A DNA stretch of 63,166 nucleotides, filler included, from Octopus bimaculoides (Eukaryota), in NCBI RefSeq assembly GCF_001194135.2. It is 6 parts of 5 records of this genome, joined end to end, with 100 filler letters (N's around TTAATTAATTAA, not from the genome) between each part and the next. Parts side by side here need not be neighbours in the genome. Positions count along the whole stretch, not along the records: positions 45,660 to 60,048 come from NC_068983.1; 5 more parts are not named here. The stretch is one strand, 5' to 3'. Positions 15,857-60,048 of this stretch are shown here, in pieces. Under the pieces are notes generated by a model. It was not told where the DNA came from. It did no database searches and saw nothing but the letters and a program-made list of their open reading frames with translations. A program made the position numbers and the translations under genes. Each line of letters opens with the position of its first letter. Position 1 is the first letter of the stretch.

Positions 15857-16321
15857 AGCATACAGCCCTAAAACATTGCCTTTAGAAAAAAGCCTGTCCA
15901 AGCCAAACCAGTAAAGAAAGGAAGAGGTTAAAATGATGATGATGATGGTGGTAGTGGTGGTGGTGATGATGATGATGATGGCCTATAATCAACTCCTGCT
16001 TTCAGAAGCAATCCTAGCCAAAACATCAAAGTGACTCTCACCTTTAAGCAAATAAGTATGGTGTATGGCTTAGTGGTTAGGGTGTTGTACTAATGGTTGC
16101 GAGATCATGCTTTCAATTCCCAGACTGGGCGTTGCATTGTGCTCTTGAGCAAAGTGCTTCGTTTAATGTTGCTTTGCAATCATTTCTTCACCTGACGTGT
16201 GGCACCCGTTGCACCTGCACAGGTAATGTTGATTTGATCACCGTAAACAAATCATCTGTGTGGTTGTTTGGCAAAAAATTGCCAAACCCTCAAATGTCAT
16301 CTAACGATGGAAGAGTCCATC

Positions 16322-45659: not shown

Positions 45660-45990
45660 AAGATACTTACACTCTGACGGGTATTCACATTGACATTACA
45701 CATCCAACGGAGCATACTGGCTTCATTCCTTGCGAGCTTACGTATGTCCTCAGCAGTTACAGCCCATGTTTCACTGCCATGTAGCATGGTTGTTCGTACG
45801 CATGCGTCATACAGTCTGCCTTTTACTCTGAGTGAGAGTCCCTTTGTCGCCAGCAGGGGTAAGAGCTCTCTAAACTTTGCCCAGGCTATTCTTATTCTAG
45901 CAGCTACACTTTCAGCGCACCCACCCCCACTACTAACTTGGTCGCCCAGATAGCGGAAGCTATCGACTACCTCTAGTTTTTCACCCTGGA
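45660..45990 (-). mobile_element. RTE-clade LINE fragment (region C-terminal to RT)
   Basis: GEKLEVVDSFRYLGDQVSSGGGCAESVAARIRIAWAKFRELLPLL...KGRLYDACVRTTMLHGSETWAVT...LARNEASMLRWM: typical RTE F.YLG, RI..AW..F and .LYG.E.W motifs. Confidence 0.92.
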
Positions 45991-46194
45991 ATGAGATAGA
46001 ATATATATATAAGGAACTTAGTAATGTAAGGGAACAAAAACTCTTATACATTCTTCTATCATTCATTTTTGTTCTGTAAAAGACTTGTAGGATTGAGATT
46101 TTGACTTTCACCAGGATATCAAGGGTTACAACAAACTCAACAACAGCAATACTAGAAAGAGATAGTAAACATGAGTATAAAAACAGTAACTTAC

Positions 46195-46298
46195 TTTACC
46201 GAAACATGGATATGAGACTTTAGAGCGAAAGTCTCCATCAAGTTTAGAGTATTTCAACAAATGACTGTAAATGTGTAGAATCTGTTCATTGAGGTTAC
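46195..46298 (-). CDS. DZANK1-like gene exon 7 (GNLNEQILHIYSHLLKYSKLDGDFRSKVSYPCFGK)
   Basis: ctatttatag|GT AAC CTC ... GGT AAA|gtaagt; 104 nt, phase 1 to 0. Confidence 0.75.
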
Positions 46299-49200
46299 CT
46301 ATAAATAGATATTGGAGAAGGATTATCCAACTTGATACCTGTAGTGTTTGTTTTCTCTGGTCATCCGATTATTTTTATACTTGTCACTAGTTTAATAACT
46401 TCAAACATTTTAAATTGGCAACATGTCATAGAAACACTTGTTACTACTGAATTTGAGGTTTTGGTATTTTTGTGCCTTTTAGATCATGTTATAAAAGGAT
46501 TAACACATCTGGAGGATCACGTTATAAAAGGATTAACACATCTGGAGGATCACGTTATAAAAGGATTAACACATCTGGAGGATCATGTTATAAAAGGATT
46601 AACACATCTGGAGGATCATACGATGAAAGGACATCTGGAGGATCATACGATGAAAGGACATCTGGAGGATCATTATATTATGGAGTTAACTTTTCTGGAG
46701 CATCATTTTATGATAGGATTAGATTAGGAAACAATACTCACCGTGACCTACACTGACATCTTGTAGTGGTGGATCCCGATATGTAAGGCGTTCAACAACC
46801 TTTGTCTTGACAGGAGCTTCGGGCAAAGCCAAAGGAGCAGGCTGCCTCACTTCAGGATTCTGTTTCTGCTGATTTTCTTCAATGATGTTCCTTATTTCAC
46901 CAATAGTTACAGCCCTGTTATTATCATTCAGACCCTGAAAGGTAAATATAGAGCAATTCTTATATTGTGTGTGAGAGAGATTTTTTTTATATATAGGTTA
47001 GGAAGGGCATCCAGCTGTAGAAACTCTGCCAGATCAGATTGGAGCCTGGTGCAGCCTGCTGGCTTGCCAGTCCGCAGTCAAATCGTCCAACCCATGCTAG
47101 CTAGCATGGAAAGCAGATGTTAAATGACGATGATGATGATGATGATGATTATATATATATATANNNNNNNNNNNNNNNNNNNNNNNNNNNNNNNNNNNNN
47201 NNNNNNNNNNNNNNNNNNNNNNNNNNNNNNNNNNNNNNNNNNNNNNNNNNNNNNNNNNNNNNNNNNNNNNNNNNNNNNNNNNNNNNNNNNNNNNNNNNNN
47301 NNNNNNNNNNNNNNNNNNNNNNNNNNNNNNNNNNNNNNNNNNNNNNNNNNNNNNNNNNNNNNNNNNNNNNNNNNNNNNNNNNNNNNNNNNNNNNNNNNNN
47401 NNNNNNNNNNNNNNNNNNNNNNNNNNNNNNNNNNNNNNNNNNNNNNNNNNNNNNNNNNNNNNNNNNNNNNNNNNNNNNNNNNNNNNNNNNNNNNNNNNNN
47501 NNNNNNNNNNNNNNNNNNNNNNNNNNNNNNNNNNNNNNNNNNNNNNNNNNNNNNNNTATATATATATATATATATATATATATAAGAGAGAGAGAGAGTG
47601 AAAGGTAGATAGTGATAGATAGATAGATAAATAGGTTCCAGATACAGATAGGCAAACATACAAGCAGTGTTGCTTTGTTTACATCTCCGTAACTAAGCAG
47701 TTCAGCAAAAGAGTTTGATAGAATAAGTACCATACTTAAACCAATACTGGGGTCAATTTGTTCAACTAAAACACCCTGTAAGGCAGTGCCCCAGTATGGC
47801 TGTAGTCCAATGATTGAAACAAGATAAAAGACAGTATTATGGGATCTAAGAAAAAGAAATACAAAATATACAAAAAAAGCAAAACAATCAATAACTGCAA
47901 AACTAATTTAGATTGTAAATTAATATCTTACTTACACGTATCATTTGTTCGGTGATAAATCCATATTGTGTGGGTTTGGGTTGGAATTGATTAAAATATT
48001 CATGGAAATTTCTGGATAGATTGGGAGGCACTCCAAACATATTGATTTGTGTCCCAGAATAGTTGGTTGGCTGGATAGATTTTTGGAGTTCCTGCATCTC
48101 TGCAAATAAAACAATAATTTTCTTTTAAGGGTGTCGCCGTAGATTATATGATGCATTTTTGCTCTGCCAGCTCCCTGGAAGGAACTGGTAGAGCAGTGCA
48201 AAAGCCTAAGATGGTGGGGGATACTGGAAGCTAAATGGAGTAAGCTGTCAGGGTTTAGTGGCAGCATTCATTCGGCAAAACTGACTAAGCTTGGAGTTAG
48301 GGTTTACAGCAAAGAGAAGGGCCATATATTCTATCCCCAAACCAGCAGAGATCACCAGATGGCTTTGGATAAAATGGGCAGGGAAAGTCAGTGGGTTGCT
48401 GCTACGAGATTAAGTTGAGATTTGATCAACCAGCTGAGTTTACCGAATGAAGGGGGTCCAATGCTGAAAGCCCCAAAAGCCCATTAAACCTCTAAATGAT
48501 CATTTATGATGCTTTCTAGAGCAGAATATTTTAGAATGAAGGGTTAGTATGAATTATCTAATGTATCTTGAGCTAAAAAGGATATTCCCACATAGTCATT
48601 TGGGTTGCTAGAACTAACAGCCATATGTCTTTCAAATCTATTTCTTATGACTGCCACTCTTAGACACATTGGATAATGTAGTCCTAGGTATACTATGTGT
48701 GAATAAAAAGTGAAATAGTCATGCCTGAGAAACCTTTTGATCATAGATTATCATTGTTGGTTAGCTTGAGGTTAGACAATCCAGTTCTGACCATCCCGTC
48801 TTTCTGTATATCTCTGATTGCATTATTCAAAATGACCCCTTTGTGATTTGGAGGAAATTCAGTTGCTCGTTCAATCAGATCAATTAATCCAATCAGAACT
48901 GACCTAAGGCTTGTTAAGAACAGCTGAAACAACATTTTTTTCACAGCAAACATACTACACCTATTCTTTGTTCTCAACCAACCATGGGGCATACATTTTC
49001 CAGGGGAAAATAGACTGGGAAACACTGTACAAAGGGGAAGTAAAAATGGCAGCTTGCAATCATGACCAATGCTCCACAGGGAGGGAAAAGCTTCAGGGAA
49101 GACATTCAACCCAATACGCTCTCAACTATACAAATTCACTGCCATTTTGTTTTTAAACATTTTATCCATGTCAAACAACTGGAGGGTGAAAGAATAATTA

Positions 49201-50035
49201 TGCATGTGATGCGGATGGATGATGATAGCTGCATAAAGAAGTGCTGAGAGCTCTAACCGTGGAAGGTGCCTGTGGAAAGGGTAGACCCAGGAAGATATGG
49301 GATGAAGTGATGAGAAGGGATCTTTGGATGCTGGGCCTTGTTGAGGAAATGACAAGGGACTGGAAGATGTGGTGATTTGCTGTACTTGATAAGACACATC
49401 AAGCTAAGTAAAGTTGCTGTCTTCCACACATACAGGTGTGTCCTTCCAGGTGCTGGTGCCACTTAAAAAGCATCTGTGCCACTGTTGCGTAAATGCATCT
49501 CTGCTGGTGCTGCATTAATGCACCCATGCTGGTGGTATACATAAAATGCAGCCAGCACACTCTGATAAAAGGTTGGCATTAGGAAGAGCATCCATGCCAC
49601 AACAGACAGCTGGAGTCTGGACAGCTTCCTGCTAGCCAGCTCCATGTCAAACCGTCCAACCCTTGCCAACATGGAAAGCAGACATTAAATGGTAATAATG
49701 ACTATTGGAAACATTAAAACTGCCACATGGAAGAACTAATCAGAAATACTAACAAATTAAACTGGAAAAAAAAAAAAAAATTAAAGAAAAATTTGAAGCC
49801 TTAAAAACCTGAAGAATTTCTGTAATTAATTCTGTGGTCATAGATATCCTCATTTTTTTCTTCCCAAGCTTGATTAACAGGGAATTCTCTTGATTGTTGA
49901 ACAGATACCATTTGGTTGTCTTTGTCTTCTCCTTCAGACAGGAAATGGTCATTCTGTAATTAAGGGAAGATAAATGTATTGAAAGGAAAATGAACTCATC
50001 AAAAATATGATTATATTATTCCTGTTCACACACAC

Positions 50036-50107
<72 letters not shown>

Positions 50108-51245
50108 AGATATTGGTGTCATGAAAACTGACACCCATGCTGGTGGTATGTAATAGCACCCATTACACGCTCGTAGTGGTTGGCATTAGGAAGGGCATCC
50201 GGCCTAGAGTCTGGTGCAGCCCCTCAGCTGACCAGCCCTGGTCAAATCGTCCAACCCATGCTAGCATGGACAACAGATGTTAAATGATGATGATGTGTTT
50301 GTGTGTACAGGCATGGCTGGGTGGTAAGAAGTTTTCTACCCAACCACATGGTTCCAGGATCAATCCCACTGCATGACACCTTGGGCAAGTGTCTTCAAAT
50401 ATAGCCTCAGGACAACCAAACCCTTGTGAGTAGATGTGACAGATGGAAACTGAAAGAAGCTTGTTTTGTGTGTGTGTTTGTGAGAGAGAGAGCACACACA
50501 TATTTCCCATATAAATACAACTTGACTTTAAGTCAAGTGATTTAATAAAATTCAGGTTGCAAGATTCCTGATGTGAAACAGATATTGTTGTATTTCGGAG
50601 TGGTCATTTTTTTTTTCTTTTGCCAAATAAACCCATGCATTATATATTTTCTCTTCAGTCGTTTATTATTTTAACTCGTGTCCATTGTCCGGAAATCTTT
50701 TGTCACACATCTGTGGCATTCCTCTGGAACTGTTTTCTCCAGAAAACTGACATTTCCAGATCCTTCATCTTGGAACTCAGGGCTGGATATTAGAGATCTG
50801 AACACAGCAATGCAGAACCATGTAGTGTGGAAAACGATTATCAATGGAGTTCCAACCGACCATAGGTTTGTTGAAGGATGAGTGACCTCTTCAGCGACAC
50901 TTTTCGTTTTCGAGTGTGTTTTTGCTCCATTTACTCCATTCTGTTCTTCTAAGATGTGTATCCTTATGTGTGCATGCGTTTGTGACCTTGTTTGAGTGCG
51001 TGTGTGTATGCTTGTGTGTGTCATAGTTTTGAGCAGCAGTGTGGTCTTCCCCTCAGCCCCATTGTGCTGCTGCTGTCCTAAGACCCAAACATATGGTACA
51101 GTTCTTGTATTCTTCTGTGTATGTGTGTTTGCCCATGGTGTTGCCATTGTGGTCGTTGTTGTTATTGCCATCGTTGTCACCACTGCTGCTGCTGCCATTG
51201 TTAATCCTGTTGTTGAAATTATTCTGGCTGTCCCCGTGAAATTTC

Positions 51246-51290
<45 letters not shown>

Positions 51291-54200
51291 GGTTTGCTTC
51301 GTATGTTGTTTGTATCCATGGCCTTTATATAGATTTATTTATTTTATCTATATCTTATATTTATCCCAGGTATGTGACAAATATATTTATTTATATATTT
51401 GTTTTTTCTTTCATACATCTATCTCTATTTCTCGTATCACAGGTAAGTGTACATATGTCTATTGTGTGTGTATTACCCCGTATGTTTCTGTGTATTATTT
51501 ACGATTTTTTTCTTCCTCTCTCTTCTCATCTCTTCTGTCTTTAGTCATGTGGTGTGGTAATGGGTAAATTATACATTATTTGATGGATATTTATCCTCAT
51601 CTTGTTTGTTGTAAACACAACATTTCGGCTGATATACCCTCCAGCCTTCTTCAGGTGTCTTGGGGAAATTTTGAACCTGGGTTCTCATTCCTAAGGTATT
51701 TTTCGATGTTATTATAATTATTATTCAGGTCCCTGTCTGGAATCGAACTCGGAATCTTGGGGTAAGTAGCCTGTGCTCTTAACCACTATGACATATACCC
51801 GTGGGCGTAATGGTTAAGAGCACGGGCTACTAACCCCGAAGATTCTGAGTTCGACTCCAGGCAGTAACCTGAATAATAATAATAATGTCAAAAAATACCT
51901 TAGGAATGAGAACCCAGGTTCGAAATTTCCCCAAGACACCTGAAGAAGGCTGGAGGGTATATCAGCCGAAACGTGTTAACAACAAACAAGATGAGGACAA
52001 ATATCTGTCAAATGTAAATAATGTACATAATTCCTCATCTCTTAAATATAGAACTGGGTAAATTATGTTGATTGATGTATTGTGAAGACAGAAGAAAATG
52101 TAATTAAAAACAGAACAGGGCTCATCACCAGAGGAACTTAAAAACTTACTTTACTATAATAACTGGAGGATTTGAAAGGTTCGTTGCTTTTGACTGGGCG
52201 GAAGTATTCACATGAATTGTCGGTATCAGACTCTTGGATATTTTCCACAAAAAATGTTTTAGTGACAACAACACTTTCTTGAAGTCCATCTCTGGAAGAG
52301 ATATAGAGTTTTGAAGATGAAAAGAAATGATTTCATTGCAAATTCCGTCCTTTGCAATTGAATATTTTACATGTGAAGATAATAAAACATGAAATACAGA
52401 AAGCTAATGAAGGAGCTTCTTTGTGTCACTGGACCTGCTAGAAAAAAAAGAGAAAAAAAAAACCTAGCAAAATTCTCTCTCAAATTGTATCCGAGAGCAG
52501 TGTTTCCTAATAGAGGTTCTCCCAAACCCTTAAGTTCCACGAGAGGTAGCTAGGAGTTCTGTGATGTTTGATAAATGGTCACAGTGTAATGATTGAAACG
52601 AGTAAACGATAAAGATTGATTAAGTAATGAAACACAGTTTGAAAATAGTTGGGTGGGTAGGTAGTTATTGCTTAACTCCTGACTCATATTGATTGAGCAG
52701 ACTAGTCATTCCAGTTATAACCATCCAACACCAATAACCACCAACACCATCACTATCACCAATAAATAAACAATGACCTATGGGATGGTCATGGGTGGAT
52801 TCCTTTTGTTCATATGTCTATTTAAGCAAGGCTGATCTAGTGCTAAGAATCAGCAACAAATATTTACCTGATTAAAAGGTATAGGATATTGTCTGCTTAA
52901 CTATTTTTGCAAAAACTAAAATCTATAAATTAGCTAAATTTAATAAAAAATTAATTATCAAATTCTTATTTTATTTTATTCTTTGCTATGTTGTCTCCCC
53001 CTCCTGGGTCTGACCTTATGGTGAGGGGGTTTGCATGATCCATAAATCCAAGAGAATGTTACCGTCCGGTTTCCCCAGGTAGGTTCCAGATTAATGGTGA
53101 CCTGTGGCACATTGACCCATTGCCAAGATGGCAGCCCCATCCTTAAACCATTCTGCAGAGGGCCAAAAGCTCACCCAGAAGGACCCTCAACATGTTATGA
53201 TACTGAGCAGAAGAAACCAGACTGCCTAACATCAGAACAGACCCCTGTATGCAGAGGGGATGACATGGGATTACCAGTGATGGGAGGTACTGGTGGACCT
53301 GGGTGGCTCTTTGCATGACAACACATACTCTCTCTCTCTTTTACTTGTTTCAGTCATTTGACTGCGGCCATGCTGGAGCACCGCCTTTAGTTGAACAAAT
53401 TGACCCCAGGACTTATTCTTTGTAAGCCTAGTACTTTCTATTGCCGAACTGCTAAGTTACAGGGACGTAAACATACCAGCATCGGTTGTCAAGTGATGAT
53501 AGGGGGACAAACACAAACACACATACATATATATATATATATATACATATATACGACGGGCTTCTTTCAGTTTCCGTCTACCAAATCCACTCGGAAGGCT
53601 TTGGTCGGCCCGAGGCTATAATAGAAGACACTTGCCCAAGGTGCCACGCAGTGGGACTGAACCCAGAACCATGTGGTTGGTAAGCAAGCTACTTACCACA
53701 CAGCCACTGCTGTGCCTATGAAACCATTAACAAGATGACCCCAGCCTCATTAAGGAAGAACATGAGACTGTGCTGTTTAGCCCAAGGTTAAACTTGATCA
53801 AACATACATATAACTTGCAGTTAGTCAACAACCAAATGACTAGACTTGATCAACAAATCCATATCTTTGGATTCAAATGTTATAATTGCGGGGATGAAAC
53901 TTTGATTTATGTTCTAGCCGCAAAACAAAAAAAAAAACAAAAAAAAAAACAAAAAAAAAAAGAAATCTGGTTTTATGCTGTCTTATAGTCTGGATAATTA
54001 TTTAGTGCATTCATTCATTTTTTAAAGACAAAGATGGAGTCTGACGTAGATTTGGCTGTTATTTCTAGCAAATCAAATAACAGCGGAAAGGCTTACTACT
54101 ATAGTTGATGCTGATGAGTGGTGGTGCTGGTGATGATGATGATGATGATGTCAGAGGTGATGACAACAGTGAAAGTAGTGATGGCAGTGACCTTGGTGGT

Positions 54201-54481
54201 GGTGATGACAACGATGGCATTGAGGGGGGTGGAATCTGACAATGACACTGAGGGCAACAACAGTGCTCAGGTTGATAACAGAATCGAGGGTGATGGCTTT
54301 GATAGGAATAGTGTTGATGGTGATGATGATGGCATAGAAGATTCAAAAGAAGCATATGTACATACATACATACATACATATATATATATACATATATATA
54401 TACACAGGGTGTCCATAAAATATCTTTACAACTTCCAAACTTTTAATCTTAATATTGTAAAGGGACTTTATGGACACCCTG

Positions 54482-54515
<34 letters not shown>

Positions 54516-54937
54516 NNNNNNNNNNATATATATATATATATATATATATATTTTTAAAAATAGCTGCACTAAGACTGGAGAAAGCCAAATGAAGCAGATA
54601 CAATTTATTTTACCTGGACACAGCAATAGTCTTAATTGTTCTCTTCCCAGGTTTCAGAGTAAATGGAGCAAAGTATTTGAATGTGATTTCCCGACCAGCC
54701 ACTTTACGTTTGAAATGACTTGGTTTCGTCCCATCAGTTGTAAAATATATACGGCAACCTTGTGTTTCTGCAAGTATATGGATACAATATGTTCTGGTTC
54801 AGTGATTCTTAACCCGAGCACTACTGTCCCCTTAAGTGCGCTGTGAGCGCAAAAGGGGCAGCAAATGTCATGGTGTTCTGTTAAAGATGCTTGTTACCCC
54901 CCTCTCTGAAATTGCTGGCTCTGTGCCAAAATTTGAA

Positions 54938-54969
<32 letters not shown>

Positions 54970-55221
54970 TACTACTAATATTATTATATATTATTATGTG
55001 AGGACACCTGGATTAGATCAAGAATGAGGGCAGAAACAGGTGTGTTGCTGTGGAGGAGATACCTGGCTACCAAGCCAAAGGGAAGAAAAAGAAATCGTTA
55101 ACTTACCTGAACTTAATTGAATCAAAGTAGATATATTAATTTTGGTTGTTATTGAATTTGTTGTAGGCCGGTTATGTAAAGGTGTAATTATTGGAGGGCA
55201 CACGCCTCCAGCACTTGGCAT
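46195..55221 (-). CDS. Protein with a DZANK1-like N-terminal (chitobiase/Fn3-associated-like) domain; join(55107-55221, 54614-54767, 52150-52291, 49809-49953, 47936-48099, 46742-46934, 46195-46298), at least 339 aa, 3' end uncertain
   Basis: Seven exons with GT-AG ends and matched phases 1,2,0,1,0,1,0 give 1017 nt with no stop. The N-terminus MPSAGGVCPPIITPL...SSETQGCRIYFTTDGTKP...TFKYFAPFTLKPGKRTIKTIAVSRDGLQESVVVTKTFFVE parallels DZANK1 (MTAGSV..P.I.PL...IYYTLDGSKP...FKY..P.TL..GK..VKAIAVS.D...S..VTK.F.V) as recalled. Confidence 0.85.
46482..46725. repeat. 33-bp minisatellite (GATCACGTTATAAAAGGATTAACACATCTGGAG) x4, two 27-bp variants and degenerate copies
   Basis: Units start at 46482, 46515, 46548, 46581 (33 bp), 46614, 46641 (27 bp) and 46668. 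Confidence 0.95.
46742..46934 (-). CDS. DZANK1-like gene exon 6 (GLNDNNRAVTIGEIRNIIEEN...VVERLTYRDPPLQDVSVGH)
   Basis: ttacctttcag|GGT CTG ... CAC G|gtgagt; 193 nt, phase 0 to 1. Confidence 0.85.
47936..48099 (-). CDS. DZANK1-like gene exon 5 (EMQELQK...FGVPPNLSRNFHEYF...YGFITEQMIR)
   Basis: ttttatttgcag|AG ATG CAG ... ATA CGT|gtaagt; 164 nt, phase 1 to 0. Confidence 0.85.
49190..49700 (+). mobile_element. RTE LINE 3' end with the same tail as SINE family S1
   Basis: HVMRMDDDSCIKKC / VEGACGKGRPRKIWDEVMRRDLWMLGLVEEMTRDWKMW (RTE C-terminal GRPRK.W motif), followed by a 3' UTR ending TGTCAAACCGTCCAACCCTTGCCAACATGGAAAGCAGACATTAAATG. Confidence 0.8.
49809..49953 (-). CDS. DZANK1-like gene exon 4 (NDHFLSEGEDK...YRNSS)
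   Basis: cccttaattacag|AAT GAC ... TCA G|gttttt; 145 nt, phase 0 to 1. The donor is weak but is required for phase. Confidence 0.7.
50750..50881 (+). mobile_element. RTE-like LINE extreme 3' coding remnant
   Basis: TFPDPSSWNSGLDIRDLNTAMQNHVVWKTII resembles the RTE C-terminal ..TGL...DL.TAM.DR..WR.I motif. Confidence 0.5.
51613..51661 (-). ncRNA. Minimal hammerhead ribozyme, left arm (complete topology)
   Basis: AAGACAC-CUGAAGA-A-GGCUG-GAGGGUAUAU-CAGCC-GAAA-UG-UU^GUGUUU: helix I AGACAC/GUGUUU (6 bp, one G-U), 5-bp helix II, minimal helix III and a GUU triplet. Predicted cut between 51619 and 51618. Confidence 0.75.
51933..51980 (+). ncRNA. Hammerhead ribozyme, right arm (core intact, cleavage site damaged)
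   Basis: Same core at 51940-51971, followed by CGUGUUAAC. A 3-nt deletion relative to the left arm turns the NUH triplet into GUG and disrupts helix I. Confidence 0.6.
52150..52291 (-). CDS. DZANK1-like gene exon 3 (RDGLQESVVVTKTFFVE...YYSK)
   Basis: tatctcttccag|A GAT GGA ... AGT AAA|gtaagt; 142 nt, phase 2 to 0. Confidence 0.9.
53335..53710 (-). mobile_element. S2 SINE copy
   Basis: Same body and tail as the other S2 copies. Confidence 0.88.
54405..54481. mobile_element. 77-bp Tc1/mariner-type mini-MITE
   Basis: CAGGGTGTCCATAAA...TTTATGGACACCCTG|TA, within a (TA)n/(TACA)n tract. Confidence 0.8.
54614..54767 (-). CDS. DZANK1-like gene exon 2 (ETQGCRIYFTTDGTKP...KTIAVS)
   Basis: atacttgcag|AA ACA CAA ... 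TCC AG|gtaaaa; 154 nt, phase 1 to 2. Confidence 0.9.
55107..55221 (-). CDS. DZANK1-like gene first coding exon (MPSAGGVCPPIITPL...; exon begins at 55230)
   Basis: atttctttccag|GAA TGA AAA ATG CCA ... TCA G|gtaagt. An in-frame TGA sits two codons before the ATG and all read-through frames are closed. The acceptor implies an unseen upstream non-coding exon. Confidence 0.85.
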
Positions 55222-55579
55222 TTTTCATTCCTGGAAAGAAATATGAAGGTTCACATTATTTTATGCAGTTCTAATGGAAGTCACAGCTGAAGCGTTCTTG
55301 ATCTGATTCTTGTTTGAAACTGTCTTCCCATTCTGTTAATACTCATTACACTCTTTCAGAAATATTTCTCATCTTGTGGGCAATAATCCTAGAATACCAA
55401 CAATATCTTGTTGCTTGGAGATTTTGAGGAAAAAAAAATGCAATATTTGAAATACACAAATAACAACTACTCTTTCTACCATAGGACAAAGCCTGAAATT
55501 GTGGCGGTTGCCGATTCCATCAACCCTCCCTTCACTATTTGGCTGTTACTTATTTCTTCAACTCCAAAAGGATCAAAGA

Positions 55580-55980
55580 CAAGTAGCTGTGTGGTAAGTA
55601 GCTTGCTTACCAACAACATGGTTCTGGGTTCAGTCCCACTGCGTGGCACCTTGGGCAAGTGTCTTCTACTATAGCCTCGGGCAGACCAAAGCCTTGTGCG
55701 TGGATTTGGTAGACGGAAACTGAAAGAAGCCCGTCGTATATATGTATATGTATATATATATGTGTGTGTTTGTGTGTCCGTGTCTGTCCCCCCAACATCG
55801 CTTGACAACCGATGTTGGTGTGTTTGCGTCCCTGTAACTTAGCGGTTCGGCAAAAGAGACCGATAGAATAAGTACTAGGCTTACAAAGTATAAGTCCTGG
55901 GATCGATTTGCTCGACTAAAGGCAGTGCTCCAGTATGGCCGCAGTCAAATGACTGAAACAAGTAAAAGAGTAAAAAGAGT
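55580..55980 (+). mobile_element. S2 SINE copy (near full length)
   Basis: GTGTGGTAAGTAGCTTGCTTACC...GGGTTCAGTCCCAC...GACTGAAACAAGTAAAAGAGTAAAAAGAG. Confidence 0.9.
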
Positions 55981-58900
55981 ACACAAAAAGACAAGATGGC
56001 TGTTTGGAATCGGCACTAAATAACAACTGATCAGCCAGCAGCATCATCATCATCATACCTTAACATAATGAGCCGTAGTAGCATCAACATCATTGTCATA
56101 ATCAACCATATCAACACCAAATGCGATATGCTTACAATGACCTCCTATTACTGAGGAGGCACATGGCTTAGTGGTAAAGGTGTTGGACTAATGATCACAT
56201 GATTGTGGTTTCAATTCCTGACTGGGCAATGAGTTGTCTTCTTGAGCAAAACACTTTATTTCACATTGCTTTAAAAGTCCACTGAGCTGGGAAAAATGAG
56301 TAATCCTGTGATGAACTAGCATCCCATCCAGGTGGGGAATATATTCACCACGGAAACCAGGAAACTGGGCCTGTATGGGTCAGCATGACTAAAGATAAAC
56401 TTTACCTTAGCTTTTTTACTTCTTATTAATCATCATTTACTGGCCGTTGTCCATGCTGGCATGGGTTGGACAGTTTGACTGGGCTGGCATGCTGAAAGGC
56501 TGCGCCAGACTCCATTCTGATTTGGCATGGTTTTCTACGGCTGGATGCCCTTCCTAATGCCAATCACTCGGAGAGTGTAATGGGTGCTTTTATGTGTGAC
56601 CAGCACAGGTGCTAACTTTCCTAATGTCAACCACTCCAAGAGTGTAATGGGTGCTTTTATGTGCCACTGGCAAAGGTGCCATTTGCATGACACCAGGATC
56701 CTTGCGTTTGTTAATCTTTAAATTCACATTTGTTCAATCTTAACAGTTCTATTGTTATTATCTTTTAATATTCGTCTCTCAAGATGGTATAAACAGGATG
56801 ATTTGACAGGATCCAGAATGCTCCTATGTCTGTTTTGTCATGGTTTTCATGGCTAGATGCCTTCCTTAATGTCAACCAATTTTGCAGTGAGTACTGGATG
56901 CTTTTTAAATGGTGCCAGGACAAGTGAAGCAGCAAGACTAAGGTTGCTTTTGAGTTAGAGAGGAAGGTGGCTTTATGCTAGGAGATAAGAAGTTCAAGTA
57001 CAAGGCCCGATAAAAAAATAGTAGTGGGACTGTTGCTATGGAAACGGAGCTAAAGTATGCTGAACTGCTAAGTTCCTGGAACATAAACAAACCAGCACCA
57101 GTTGTCAAGTAATAAGGAGACAAACAAACACACACACATATACATACATACATACACATACTCACACACACATGATGAGCTTCTTTCAATTTCAATCAAT
57201 CAAATCTACTCAAGGTTTTTGGCCCAGGGTCACATTAGAAAACACTTAATTAAGGTGCTATGCAGTTGGTCTGAACCCTAATCCATGTGGTTGGGAATCA
57301 AACTTCTTAACCACACAACCATCATTTTATCTTTTTTTTTAAGGCATGTTGTCTGAATTACTTTATCCAATGTAATTTAAGATTTGGCAGTTGTTTCTAG
57401 CAGGTTGAGTGACTACATAACAGCTCCTACATTTTCTTGTAGTCAGTGGTTTTGTTTGGGTGTCCGTCACCCAGAGAACAATATACTGTTATCACCAAGA
57501 TTTATTTGCTTAGAGACAAGCATCAACTGATTAATCTCGCTAAGTAATGCTCCTTAGAATTTCCAGCCATGAAATTTCAGCTGTTCAATCAATTAATCCA
57601 CCTATTTATTGAATTCCTGTGTAAATGGCTAAGTATATCACACACATGATATGATGGCAGTTTCTTCATGTCCAAAGATCATGAGAATGAATGGCATGCC
57701 CTCAAGTGTTAAGTAAACCAATCTTTGACGTTGCAGGGCTCTTCTTGCTGTCTGTGCTGATTAGTTTTAAACTGAACCAGTTCCATACATTTCAATCCCA
57801 CTTTTCAGACATGGAGACCTGAAAACGATAGCTCAGTGGCCTAAGACGGCTATGGCAACCAACCAGGGGTAGGTTTCACATTGGAGAGGCCTTCTCCTAG
57901 GTCAGTTGCCTTTTAGGGCTGGGGAGCTGCACCTACCCTGGAGATGCATGAAGGGTCTCAAAGAGAGCACCAAACTGCCTGAAGGATTCCACTATTTCAT
58001 CTGTTGTCAAGGTTGACAACCCTAGCCTTTCCTTTTCCCAAGGCTCTCACAAAGCATTAAGGCTACATGTGTACCCTTAATGCACACATTTTGCCTTAAT
58101 GTAATTCCAAGGGGTAGTGTTAGCATAAGACTGGACCTTTGAATTACCGGTACAACCCATCAAACAACCTTCTGTACATTATCGGTCTGTCCAGTTTTCA
58201 TTCATAAGTGTAGTGTCAACTCAAAGACTAAAGTAAAAAAACTTTGATCCAGGTTGAACCTGGAACCTTGTGATAACAAAGCAAACCTTTAAACTATTCA
58301 GTCATACTCTTTGTATCTTTTCTATTGGTTCAAGGTCTGAAATTTTGTGGGAGAGAGGTAATTGCTTACATAGACCCCAGGGCTTGACCAGTACTATTTT
58401 ATCGACCCTGAAGGAATGAAGGGCAAAGTCAGCTTCAGTGTACTTTGAACTCAGAACATGAAACCAGAAGAAACGCTACTTAGCATTTTGTCTGGCATGC
58501 TGGTAATTCTCTGTTTGCCATCTTATACTGTGTTTGTATAAAAAAAAAAAATCAATATTAGCATATTTAATGAAGTTAGCATTAAGAAGCTAATTAGAAG
58601 AGAGAAAAAGTAATATCAGTTCAATAATTAACATCATTGTAATCTGAGTAATTAAATACACTAATTTGTTATTTTATAATACAATAATTTTTCCCAGCTC
58701 CTCGTCTATAATATTGTGCATTTATCTAGTGATTCTCTTGTCACTACTTCAGCAAATAAACGGTGAAGAGTATGCTTGGCTGAGGAACATCAAAACCTGT
58801 CTGAAATTTTATTGTGTCTGGGGAGAGTCATTCTCTTTTAGTGCCTTATTAATTTAACACACTCACTGGTCTGATTTCCACTCATTTATTCAGTTTTATT

Positions 58901-60048
58901 AAAATTTTCTTTTCTGTCATTGAGTTCTTACTCATCCCTAAAAGCATGGGAAAGTTAACAACATTAAAATGATGAAGAGATGATAAGTAAATCAGTCACG
59001 AGGAGCAAAGCAATGACAACCCCCCACCCAATGCTCAACTGATACTTGTTTCATAGACCCTGAGAGGATGAAAGATAAAGTTAACCTTGGCAGAATTTGA
59101 ACTCAGAATACAAATAGGCAGAAGAAATATCCTTAAGCATTTAGTCCAGCATAACAAAACTGCCACCGCACTGCCTTATTAATAATAATAATAATCTTTT
59201 CTACAATACACAAAACACCTGAAATTTTAGGAGGGAGGGATGGAGGGGAGTCAATTACATTAACCCCAGTGCTCACCTACTTATTTTATTGACCCTGGTA
59301 GGATAAAAGGCAAAGTTGACTTCAACAGAATTTGAACTCAGAACATAGACGAAATGTTGTTAAGCATTTTGCCAGGCGTGCTAACGATTCTGCCAGCTCA
59401 TCACCTTAATAATAATAATATGCCAAAGGATAGAAATTTGCTGGGAAGAATTTGATTAAAGTGGCCCAAGTTCTCGACTTGTACTTCATTTTATCGATCC
59501 CAGAATGAATGAAAGGCTAAGTTATCCATGGTGACATTTGAACTTGGAACATAAGCTGAGATTAAATACCACAAGGCAGGAACAGGTGTGGCTGTGTGGT
59601 AAGAAGCTTGCTTCCCAACCACACAGTTCTGGATTCAGTCCCACTGGGTAACACCTTAGGCAAGTGTCTTTTACTATAGCCTTGGGCCAACAAAAGTCTT
59701 CTGAATAGATTTCATGGATGGAAACTGAAAGAAGCCCATAGTATTCTTTTACTTGTTTCAATCATTTGACTGCAGCCATGCTATATATCATCATCATCAT
59801 CATCATCATCGTTTAACGTCCGCTTTCCATGCTAGCATGGGTTGGACGATTTGACTGAGGACTGGTGAAACCGGATGGCAACACCAGGCTCCAGTCTAAT
59901 TTGGCAGAGTTTCTACAGCTGGATGCCCTTCCTAACGCCAACCACTCAGAGAGTGTAGTGGGTGCTTTTACGTGTCACCCGCACGAAAACGGCCACGCTC
60001 GAAATGGTGTCTTTTATGTGCCACCCGCACAAGAGCCAGTCCAGGGGC

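Follow-up and report, generated by a model that had tools for sequence, protein, structure and literature searches.

We report here that a 482-bp insert in the genome of Octopus bimaculoides probably represents one integration of an octopod, non-autonomous family resembling short interspersed nuclear elements (SINEs) and mobilised by a Penelope-like element (PLE), because its insertion anatomy reproduces the signature published for PLEs, and Penelope elements are expanded and have been recently active in octopus genomes. Together with its flanking repeats, the insert occupies positions 51561–52066 of the window, i.e., the whole stretch of 63,166 nt of joined parts of assembly GCF_001194135.2, and the piece examined comprised positions 45,660–60,048 (14.4 kb; NC_068983.1). 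The unit of the family measures ~230–265 nt and opens with a tRNA-derived head in which A and B boxes are present; an (AAT)n linker, a body hairpin of small size and a conserved 3' module of ~125 nt complete it. The latter consists of a Penelope-type minimal type-I hammerhead ribozyme, after which comes a 3' region with either a short end or an additional tail of ~30 nt; this module is also conserved in a second, distant genome. Like SINEs, the unit is short and non-coding, and occurs in many dispersed copies that have a defined 5' end. The initial annotation of this locus had proposed a SINE-type unit with a tRNA-type promoter head, in which a Penelope-type minimal hammerhead takes the place of the tail derived from a long interspersed nuclear element (LINE), and this description was borne out. 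The motifs are not attributable to chance and belong to a multi-copy family.

The insert is bounded by an exact 12-nt direct repeat, flush with it at each end, which is a target-site duplication (TSD). Its two inverted arms meet head to head at 51800/51803, with CCCGTGGG spanning the joint, and are arranged as follows:

51561–51572, no strand: left TSD copy, 12 bp, TGGGTAAATTAT, an exact direct repeat adjoining the insert
51573–51800, minus strand: left arm, a full-length SINE unit without the 3' tail, which begins GGGTATATGTCATAGTGG on this strand and has the short 3' end ...AATAATGTA
51801–51802, no strand: head-to-head junction, a GT filler inside the near-palindrome CCCGTGGG
51803–52054, plus strand: right arm, a full-length SINE unit including the 3' tail
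52055–52066, no strand: right TSD copy, 12 bp, TGGGTAAATTAT, an exact direct repeat adjoining the insert

The arms are 88.7% identical across 212 nt (BLAST), and the right arm extends 29 nt beyond the end of the left one (52026–52054). Both the insertion of ~480 bp with a 12-bp TSD and the pair of head-to-head arms of ~220 bp had been described in the initial annotation, and both were recovered here. Further copies within the 14.4-kb piece were not detected by self-BLAST. A read-through RNA is predicted to form a hairpin of ~220 bp with few interruptions (−333 kcal/mol, z = −35.6). The folds of the single arms were not unusual (z = −0.4 and −0.6). A long double-stranded RNA (dsRNA) hairpin in any read-through transcript would be the likely local consequence.

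The 3' half of the unit is traversed by an open frame, whose translation matches two Octopus bimaculoides proteins, namely an uncharacterised protein of 51 aa (P0001) containing ...NVNNVHNSSSLKYRT, which corresponds to the translated 29-nt extension, and dystrobrevin beta (P0002), whose alternative first exon is an exonised copy. The annotated 94-aa isoform X1 of the latter (GCA_001194135.2) starts in the exonised SINE copy (…GEGWRVYQPKCCVNNKQDEDKYPSK…), and the hammerhead region is translated in this gene model. An exhaustive search among cluster-representative open reading frames (ORFs) gave 31 matches at E ≤ 0.001, from which 28 were inspected as repeat copies and were found to be mostly translations of related repeats, the peptide PEEGWRxYQPK spelling CCUGAAGAAGGCUGG...CAGCCGAAA; P0142 and P0150 were rejected as family members, their matches being unrelated and of low complexity. 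An antisense ORF search yielded no candidates, and exact core-motif scans of metagenome, genome and viral contigs gave 0 matches. DNA was recovered for 10 further independent loci (11 with the window), including 6 from the read assemblies SRR11869385-94 and 4 from long contigs of the ENA assembly ERZ21867824, referred to below by the labels L001 to L012. At least one contig of the SRR11869385-94 set has another octopus SINE in common with the piece, and positions 53333–53391 of the window match the end of the Logan contig L001 at 83% identity; the contigs of ERZ21867824, a eukaryote, have nothing but the module in common with the piece.

Head-to-head (−)(+) pairs occur at 6 of the 11 loci, the window included, tail-to-tail pairs at none, and monomers are also present; the inverted-pair architecture is not unique to this locus. 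The paired arms are 5'-truncated at different points in L001, L003, L009 and L010. With regard to target-site duplications, the unequal inverted pair of L003 is enclosed by a 10-bp TSD (ATAAATAGTA), a possible 8-bp TSD was found at L006, and no clear one at L001 or L012. The latter locus is a monomer of full length; its head (GGACATATGGCATAATGGTTAAAAACATGGGCTACTAATCC...AGTTCAATTC) shows homology to those of the window and starts at the same first nucleotide, both window arms and L012 sharing the 5' end GGRYATATG..TAATGG, and both arms are thus complete units. Because the arms of the relatives are unequally 5'-truncated and full-length monomers exist, the inverted pair is a product of integration and not a palindromic master copy, contrary to the earlier suggestion that the dimer itself had been the inserting unit. 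A second lineage, that of the ENA contigs, carries another tRNA-like head, with the A box TGGCGTAACGG and the B box GTTCAATTC, and another body on the same hammerhead-plus-tail module, which in this lineage is also found in head-to-tail arrays with a 129-nt period (L006, 10017–10378; L010, 4290–4551); two of the tandem units of L006 are formally intact minimal hammerheads. In L007 (10184–10440), an unrelated tRNA-derived SINE (TGGTCTAGTGG...GGTTCAATCCCAGG, translating ...GSIPGRVIPKT) lies directly after the module tail, with a second copy near 16050.

The 29 additional nucleotides of the right arm belong to the family as well:

52026–52054, plus strand: 29-nt 3' tail CATAATTCCTCATCTCTTAAATATAGAAC, on one arm only, conserved across the family

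This tail is conserved in P0001, both arms of L001, the minus arm of L003, and in L007, L008 and L012, the last three being monomers. Its placement varies: in the window just the right arm carries it, in L003 just the minus arm and in L006 just the plus array, whereas L001 has it on both arms. The extension noted by the initial annotation at these coordinates is present in the right arm; it is the family's own 3' tail, often found on one arm of a pair only, and the family has two alternative 3' ends, short or tailed. In the predicted fold, a perfect 9-bp stem (AGAUGAGGA/UCCUCAUCU, 51989–51997 with 52032–52040) joins the post-ribozyme region to the tail; since one of its strands lies in the tail, this stem is restricted to tail-bearing copies, and it could constitute a recognition hairpin or be related to the origin of the tail.

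Insertions of endonuclease-positive PLEs have been described as carrying an adjacent inverted copy, mostly head to head, with palindromes at the junction, a tail of 30–40 bp that only one of the inverted repeats bears at its 3' end, truncated 5' ends, partially tandem copies and TSDs of 8–10 bp, and inverted 5'-truncated copies and solo pseudo-long terminal repeats (pLTRs) are common among them (Arkhipova et al., 2013, PMC3846280; Craig et al., 2021, PMC8557442). Every item of this published signature is displayed by the window insert and its relatives, among them a recurrent head-to-head copy, a tail at one end and a short TSD of variable length (12 and 10 bp). The octopus insert differs from those elements in being wholly non-coding and only 482 bp long, with both arms reaching the 5' end of the unit. 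We propose that an RNA would be made from the internal RNA polymerase III (Pol III) promoter and would be copied and integrated in trans by the reverse transcriptase (RT) and GIY-YIG endonuclease of an autonomous PLE recognising the 3' module; as for PLEs, integration would often yield a head-to-head pair in which one arm bears the tail, together with a short TSD of variable length. In the window, both arms would have been copied to the very 5' end, giving rise to the near-perfect 482-bp palindrome.

The promoter elements and linkers of the two arms were located at the following positions:

51783–51793, minus strand: A box TGTCATAGTGG of the left arm, 1 mismatch to TRGCNNAGTGG
51739–51749, minus strand: B box AGTTCGATTCC of the left arm, 1 mismatch to the consensus
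51711–51725, minus strand: (AAT)n-type linker of the left arm, with homologous A/T-rich linkers in L003, L005 and L012
51803–51813, plus strand: degraded A-box region GGGCGTAATGG of the right arm
51848–51858, plus strand: B box AGTTCGACTCC of the right arm
51872–51886, plus strand: (AAT)5 linker of the right arm

In the left arm, the two boxes lie 44 nt apart, start to start, which is the spacing of a tRNA; no other pair of this kind occurs in the 14.4-kb piece, and 300 dinucleotide shuffles produced none. Neither arm contains a T4 run in its sense strand, and this, together with the A and B boxes, hints indirectly at transcription of the unit by Pol III. Because no cloverleaf was found, either by ARAGORN (by default or at a 60% threshold) or with the Rfam tRNA model (none at E ≤ 10), the head is a tRNA-type promoter remnant rather than a recognisable tRNA. 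From the tRNA-like heads that the initial annotation had assigned to each arm, both boxes on the left and the B box on the right were recovered, but the right A box is degraded. The linker is a hot spot of length change in the family. At L003 (866–1000), it has grown between the head remnant and the body to an A-rich microsatellite of ~130 nt, and the tRNA-like head is mostly gone.

With respect to the ribozyme, an explicit minimal-hammerhead descriptor matched once in the piece and in 0 of 2000 dinucleotide shuffles. The initial annotation had placed a minimal hammerhead in each arm; that of the left arm is formally complete, but that of the right arm is broken:

51613–51660, minus strand: type-I minimal hammerhead, formally complete, left arm, located by the explicit descriptor
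51934–51975, plus strand: defective hammerhead, right arm, in which AGACAC, CUGAAGA (51940–51946), A, GGCUGG...UCAGCC, GAA and ACGU are preserved

On the minus strand, the left-arm motif reads AGACAC CUGAAGA A GGCUGG-AGGGUAUA-UCAGCC GAA AUGU U/GUGUUU (the slash marking the predicted cut). Helix I comprises 6 bp (AGACAC/GUGUUU, 51660–51655 with 51618–51613), and the core includes CUGAAGA (51654–51648), an unpaired extra A after A9 (51647) and GAA (51626–51624). Helix II, of 6 bp starting from G10.1–C11.1 (GGCUGG/UCAGCC), pairs 51646–51641 with 51632–51627, and helix III is limited to 2 bp without a loop (AUGU, 51623–51620). With U17 at 51619, the predicted cleavage triplet is GUU, and the cut would be expected before 51618. 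The minimal-hammerhead core (C3U4G5A6N7G8A9...G12A13A14, A15.1–U16.1, H17) is complete in the left arm, whereas the right arm departs from it at position 17; a 3-nt deletion removed U17, leaving a G at that position, as well as the start of helix I, which is reduced to 0 bp, and the right-arm ribozyme is thus defective.

The minimal hammerheads of PLEs are characterised by a nucleotide that separates positions 9 and 10.1, a G10.1–C11.1 pair, palindromic 15.2–16.2 positions, a long helix II and a short helix I (Cervera and de la Pena, 2014, PMC4209133). In the octopus family, the extra A between A9 and 10.1 is found in both arms and in nearly all relatives, G10.1–C11.1 is G–C in 8 of 14 scorable copies (GU or AU in 3), and the palindromic ACGU at helix III is present in the right arm and in copies of L006, L008, L011 and L012, the AUGU of the left arm reflecting CpG decay. 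Across 16 copies, 75% of the helix cells are paired versus 19–45% when the partners are slid, a contrast for which the shuffle control was not significant; at the helix II pair 10.4–11.4, 9 copies have UA, 4 have CG and 3 have UG, so that no copy is unpaired there. Overall, the octopus ribozyme resembles those of PLE pLTRs in being of type I, with a CUGANGA/GAAA core, a 6-bp helix II and a loop-less ACGU (PMC4209133; Lunse et al., 2017), but it resides in a tRNA-headed unit of ~250 nt instead of beside an RT/GIY-YIG ORF. As helix III lacks a loop, the predicted hammerhead could cleave only as a dimer, and self-cleavage at the window locus is unlikely, because the two ribozymes lie on opposite strands, one of them is defective, and helix III, when loop-less, requires a second copy oriented in the same way. 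The hammerhead is probably a module kept for a PLE-type life cycle, either for the processing of multimeric RNA or for recognition by the enzyme, and not locally active.

Several observations weigh against mobilisation by a PLE and against a functional ribozyme. The ribozymes are decayed in most individual copies; helix I is dependable for only ~3 bp across the 16 copies, and has 3 bp in the ENA lineage; and covariation is thin, with one clearly compensatory pair and non-significant shuffle controls. The search with Rfam hammerhead models suggested in the initial annotation returned no match at E ≤ 10 in the piece, in the 551-nt element or in L006; this silence is a weak negative for a ribozyme of this type, since the formally perfect copies of L006 were missed too, and it was dropped as evidence against the ribozyme, given that the descriptor located the motif. 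The loci were found via called ORFs, and inverted pairs may be over-sampled among them. The arms differ by ~19% outside an 81-nt core, which is not predicted by a simple snap-back on one template. Finally, the only RT fragments nearby look LINE-like, and as neither the piece nor any of the fetched loci yielded an autonomous PLE (RT plus GIY-YIG) carrying the 3' module, the dependence of the family on a PLE is one that we infer from sequence signatures.

These last two observations equally count for the alternative that survives best, albeit at a low probability, namely an ordinary tRNA-derived SINE mobilised by a LINE, the hammerhead-like core being an inert fossil and the pair arising via twin priming or target-primed reverse transcription on two templates. 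SINEs are very abundant in octopus, and twin priming gives inversions flanked by a TSD. However, neither a poly(A) nor a simple-repeat 3' end is present in the element; the recurrence of head-to-head pairs at 6 of 11 loci, the one-sided tail of ~30 nt and the tandem 3' modules make up a PLE signature that is unusual for LINE-driven SINEs; and the conserved 3' module is exactly a minimal hammerhead of PLE type.

Slightly less probable still is the view that the insert is not a SINE at all, the arms being heavily 5'-truncated or solo pLTR remnants of an autonomous PLE, duplicated in inverse by snap-back, with A and B boxes that are coincidental or part of a PLE untranslated region. Such remnants are common for PLEs, snap-back would automatically give equal arms, and the failure to detect a cloverleaf is what this view would expect. 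Conversely, this view is at odds with the common 5' end of both window arms and the independent monomer L012, with boxes at exact tRNA spacing that were never found among the 300 shuffles, and with the second lineage, in which the module is coupled to another tRNA-like head. Furthermore, no coding sequence was found upstream of the unit in L003, L007, L008 or L012, i.e., no copy runs upstream into a coding region.

The remaining models were rejected. A single SINE duplicated locally in inverse by DNA fold-back, or two independent copies that landed head to head, would fit an arm identity of only 88.7%, as expected from old divergence or separate origins; we consider this very unlikely, as the perfect 12-bp repeat brackets the whole pair and neither arm has a TSD of its own, the architecture recurs at other loci, one of them with a 10-bp TSD, and a fold-back would have inverted flanking DNA too. 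A miniature inverted-repeat or foldback DNA transposon with long terminal inverted repeats, to which a palindromic 482-bp insert with a TSD might point, is the least credible of all, in that the true termini are not inverted repeats (the 29-nt right tail has no left counterpart), the TSD length varies (12 and 10 bp), the relatives are monomers and unequally 5'-truncated pairs, and the unit has a polarity, from promoter head to ribozyme to tail.

Returning to the integration of a PLE-mobilised SINE-like unit, the differences between the two arms are unevenly distributed with respect to the following segments:

51623–51703, minus strand: 81-nt core of the left arm (body hairpin plus hammerhead core)
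51891–51971, plus strand: 81-nt conserved core of the right arm

A single difference was counted in the 81 core columns versus 28 in the other 150 aligned columns (binomial P = 6e-5). The core is not protected from mutation as such, because it decays in older copies elsewhere. The 12-bp TSD is perfect despite the diverged flanks of the arms' cores. These data mildly favour a young insertion whose arms had two distinct RNAs as templates, both from a family with its core under selection, and this would fit priming on both nicked strands; alternatively, it is possible that a short arm-to-arm gene conversion erased differences in the core.

The initial annotation knew of no description of this combination of promoter and ribozyme, but a precedent exists. 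The SMalpha and Sjalpha elements of Schistosoma (Ferbeyre et al., 1998; Laha et al., 2000; review PMC6765202) are likewise short and non-autonomous, with a Pol III promoter and a type-I hammerhead. The SMalpha hammerhead is canonical and active in vitro, and the element often occurs in tandem repeats, whereas the octopus element carries a loop-less minimal hammerhead of PLE type and is dispersed, typically as a monomer or an inverted pair. The ribozyme of SMalpha possesses a real helix III and loop–loop contacts. The octopus family is a cephalopod variant of a combination known from schistosomes, and not a wholly new kind of element. Metazoan non-LTR retrozymes (Cervera and de la Pena, 2020, PMC7229834; Li et al., 2026 preprint, 10.64898/2026.07.22.740005), whose dependence on PLEs is a topic of current interest, are also non-autonomous hammerhead repeats thought to be mobilised by PLEs, and the head-to-tail modules of the ENA relatives, each with a hammerhead, resemble them. 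Nonetheless, retrozymes are tandem repeats of 170–400 bp with canonical type-I ribozymes and circular RNAs, and a tRNA-type promoter has not been described for them; the window copy falls outside their definition, being an inverted and not a tandem pair, and the 129-nt period of the ENA arrays is shorter than 170–400. The classical tRNA SINEs of octopus (Ohshima and Okada, 1994; tRNA-Core/tRNA-Deu, PMC8967140) are similarly short and abundant, with an A/B-box head and a TSD, but end in a LINE-derived tail with a simple-repeat end, in contrast to the ribozyme module and PLE-type integration of the present insert. Short non-autonomous Penelope elements have already been noted, and minimal hammerheads are known to occur dispersed and as opposite-strand pairs ~100–700 bp apart (PMC4209133). 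In the literature searched, the coverage of which was incomplete, no description of a tRNA-headed SINE with a PLE minimal-hammerhead module was found, in cephalopods or elsewhere.

Only tentatively, and as a possibility that we hold to be somewhat doubtful, we extend this reading to an undescribed class of Pol III-transcribed tRNA SINEs that would parasitise PLEs via a ~125-nt module that octopods share with one or more distant animal genomes. Many of the thousands of dispersed metazoan minimal hammerheads would be explained by it, and the arms in the window would have been copied from two RNAs primed on two nicked strands.

The surroundings of the insert in the piece contain other repeats. 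At 45660–46111 (minus strand), a retrotransposon ORF fragment (…FRYLGDQV…LHGSETWAV…), cut by the edge of the piece, gave no Pfam match; it is 74–95% identical to uncharacterised Octopus bimaculoides proteins and ~55% identical to many metagenome ORFs, and looks like the region C-terminal to a LINE RT, not a PLE one. Other abundant octopus SINE-like repeats lie at 55476–55808, which translates ...GTLGKCLLL..., at 53333–53391, and at 59865–60048, the last being cut by the edge of the piece. A tandem repeat with units of ~33 nt (46430–46700, plus strand) translates HLEDHVIKGLT / RYKRINTSGGS, and runs of N (403 in total) at ~47170–47570 and ~54520 are assembly gaps flanked by (TA)n-type simple repeats. 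Sub-threshold Rfam matches to mir-297, mir-1277 and mir-3149 (50023–50093, 53505–53578 and 54345–54550) were discarded, as these are (TA)n/(TG)n low-complexity hairpins and not microRNA genes.

SINEs are normally defined as parasites of LINEs, recognised via a LINE-derived 3' tail. If our interpretation is correct, a tRNA-headed SINE integrated by PLEs would extend the SINE concept to the third class of retrotransposons, and would give a concrete identity to part of the unexplained dispersed minimal hammerheads. The family would also provide a small and abundant reporter for questions on PLEs, such as the role of the ribozyme and the making of inverted and tandem insertions with a single tail, and the priming of two RNAs at two nicks, if true, would constitute a testable model for the head-to-head structures of PLEs. 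For the octopus itself, inverted SINE pairs would give rise to dsRNA hairpins of ~220 bp, potential substrates of ADAR or of small-RNA pathways in a lineage with heavy RNA editing.

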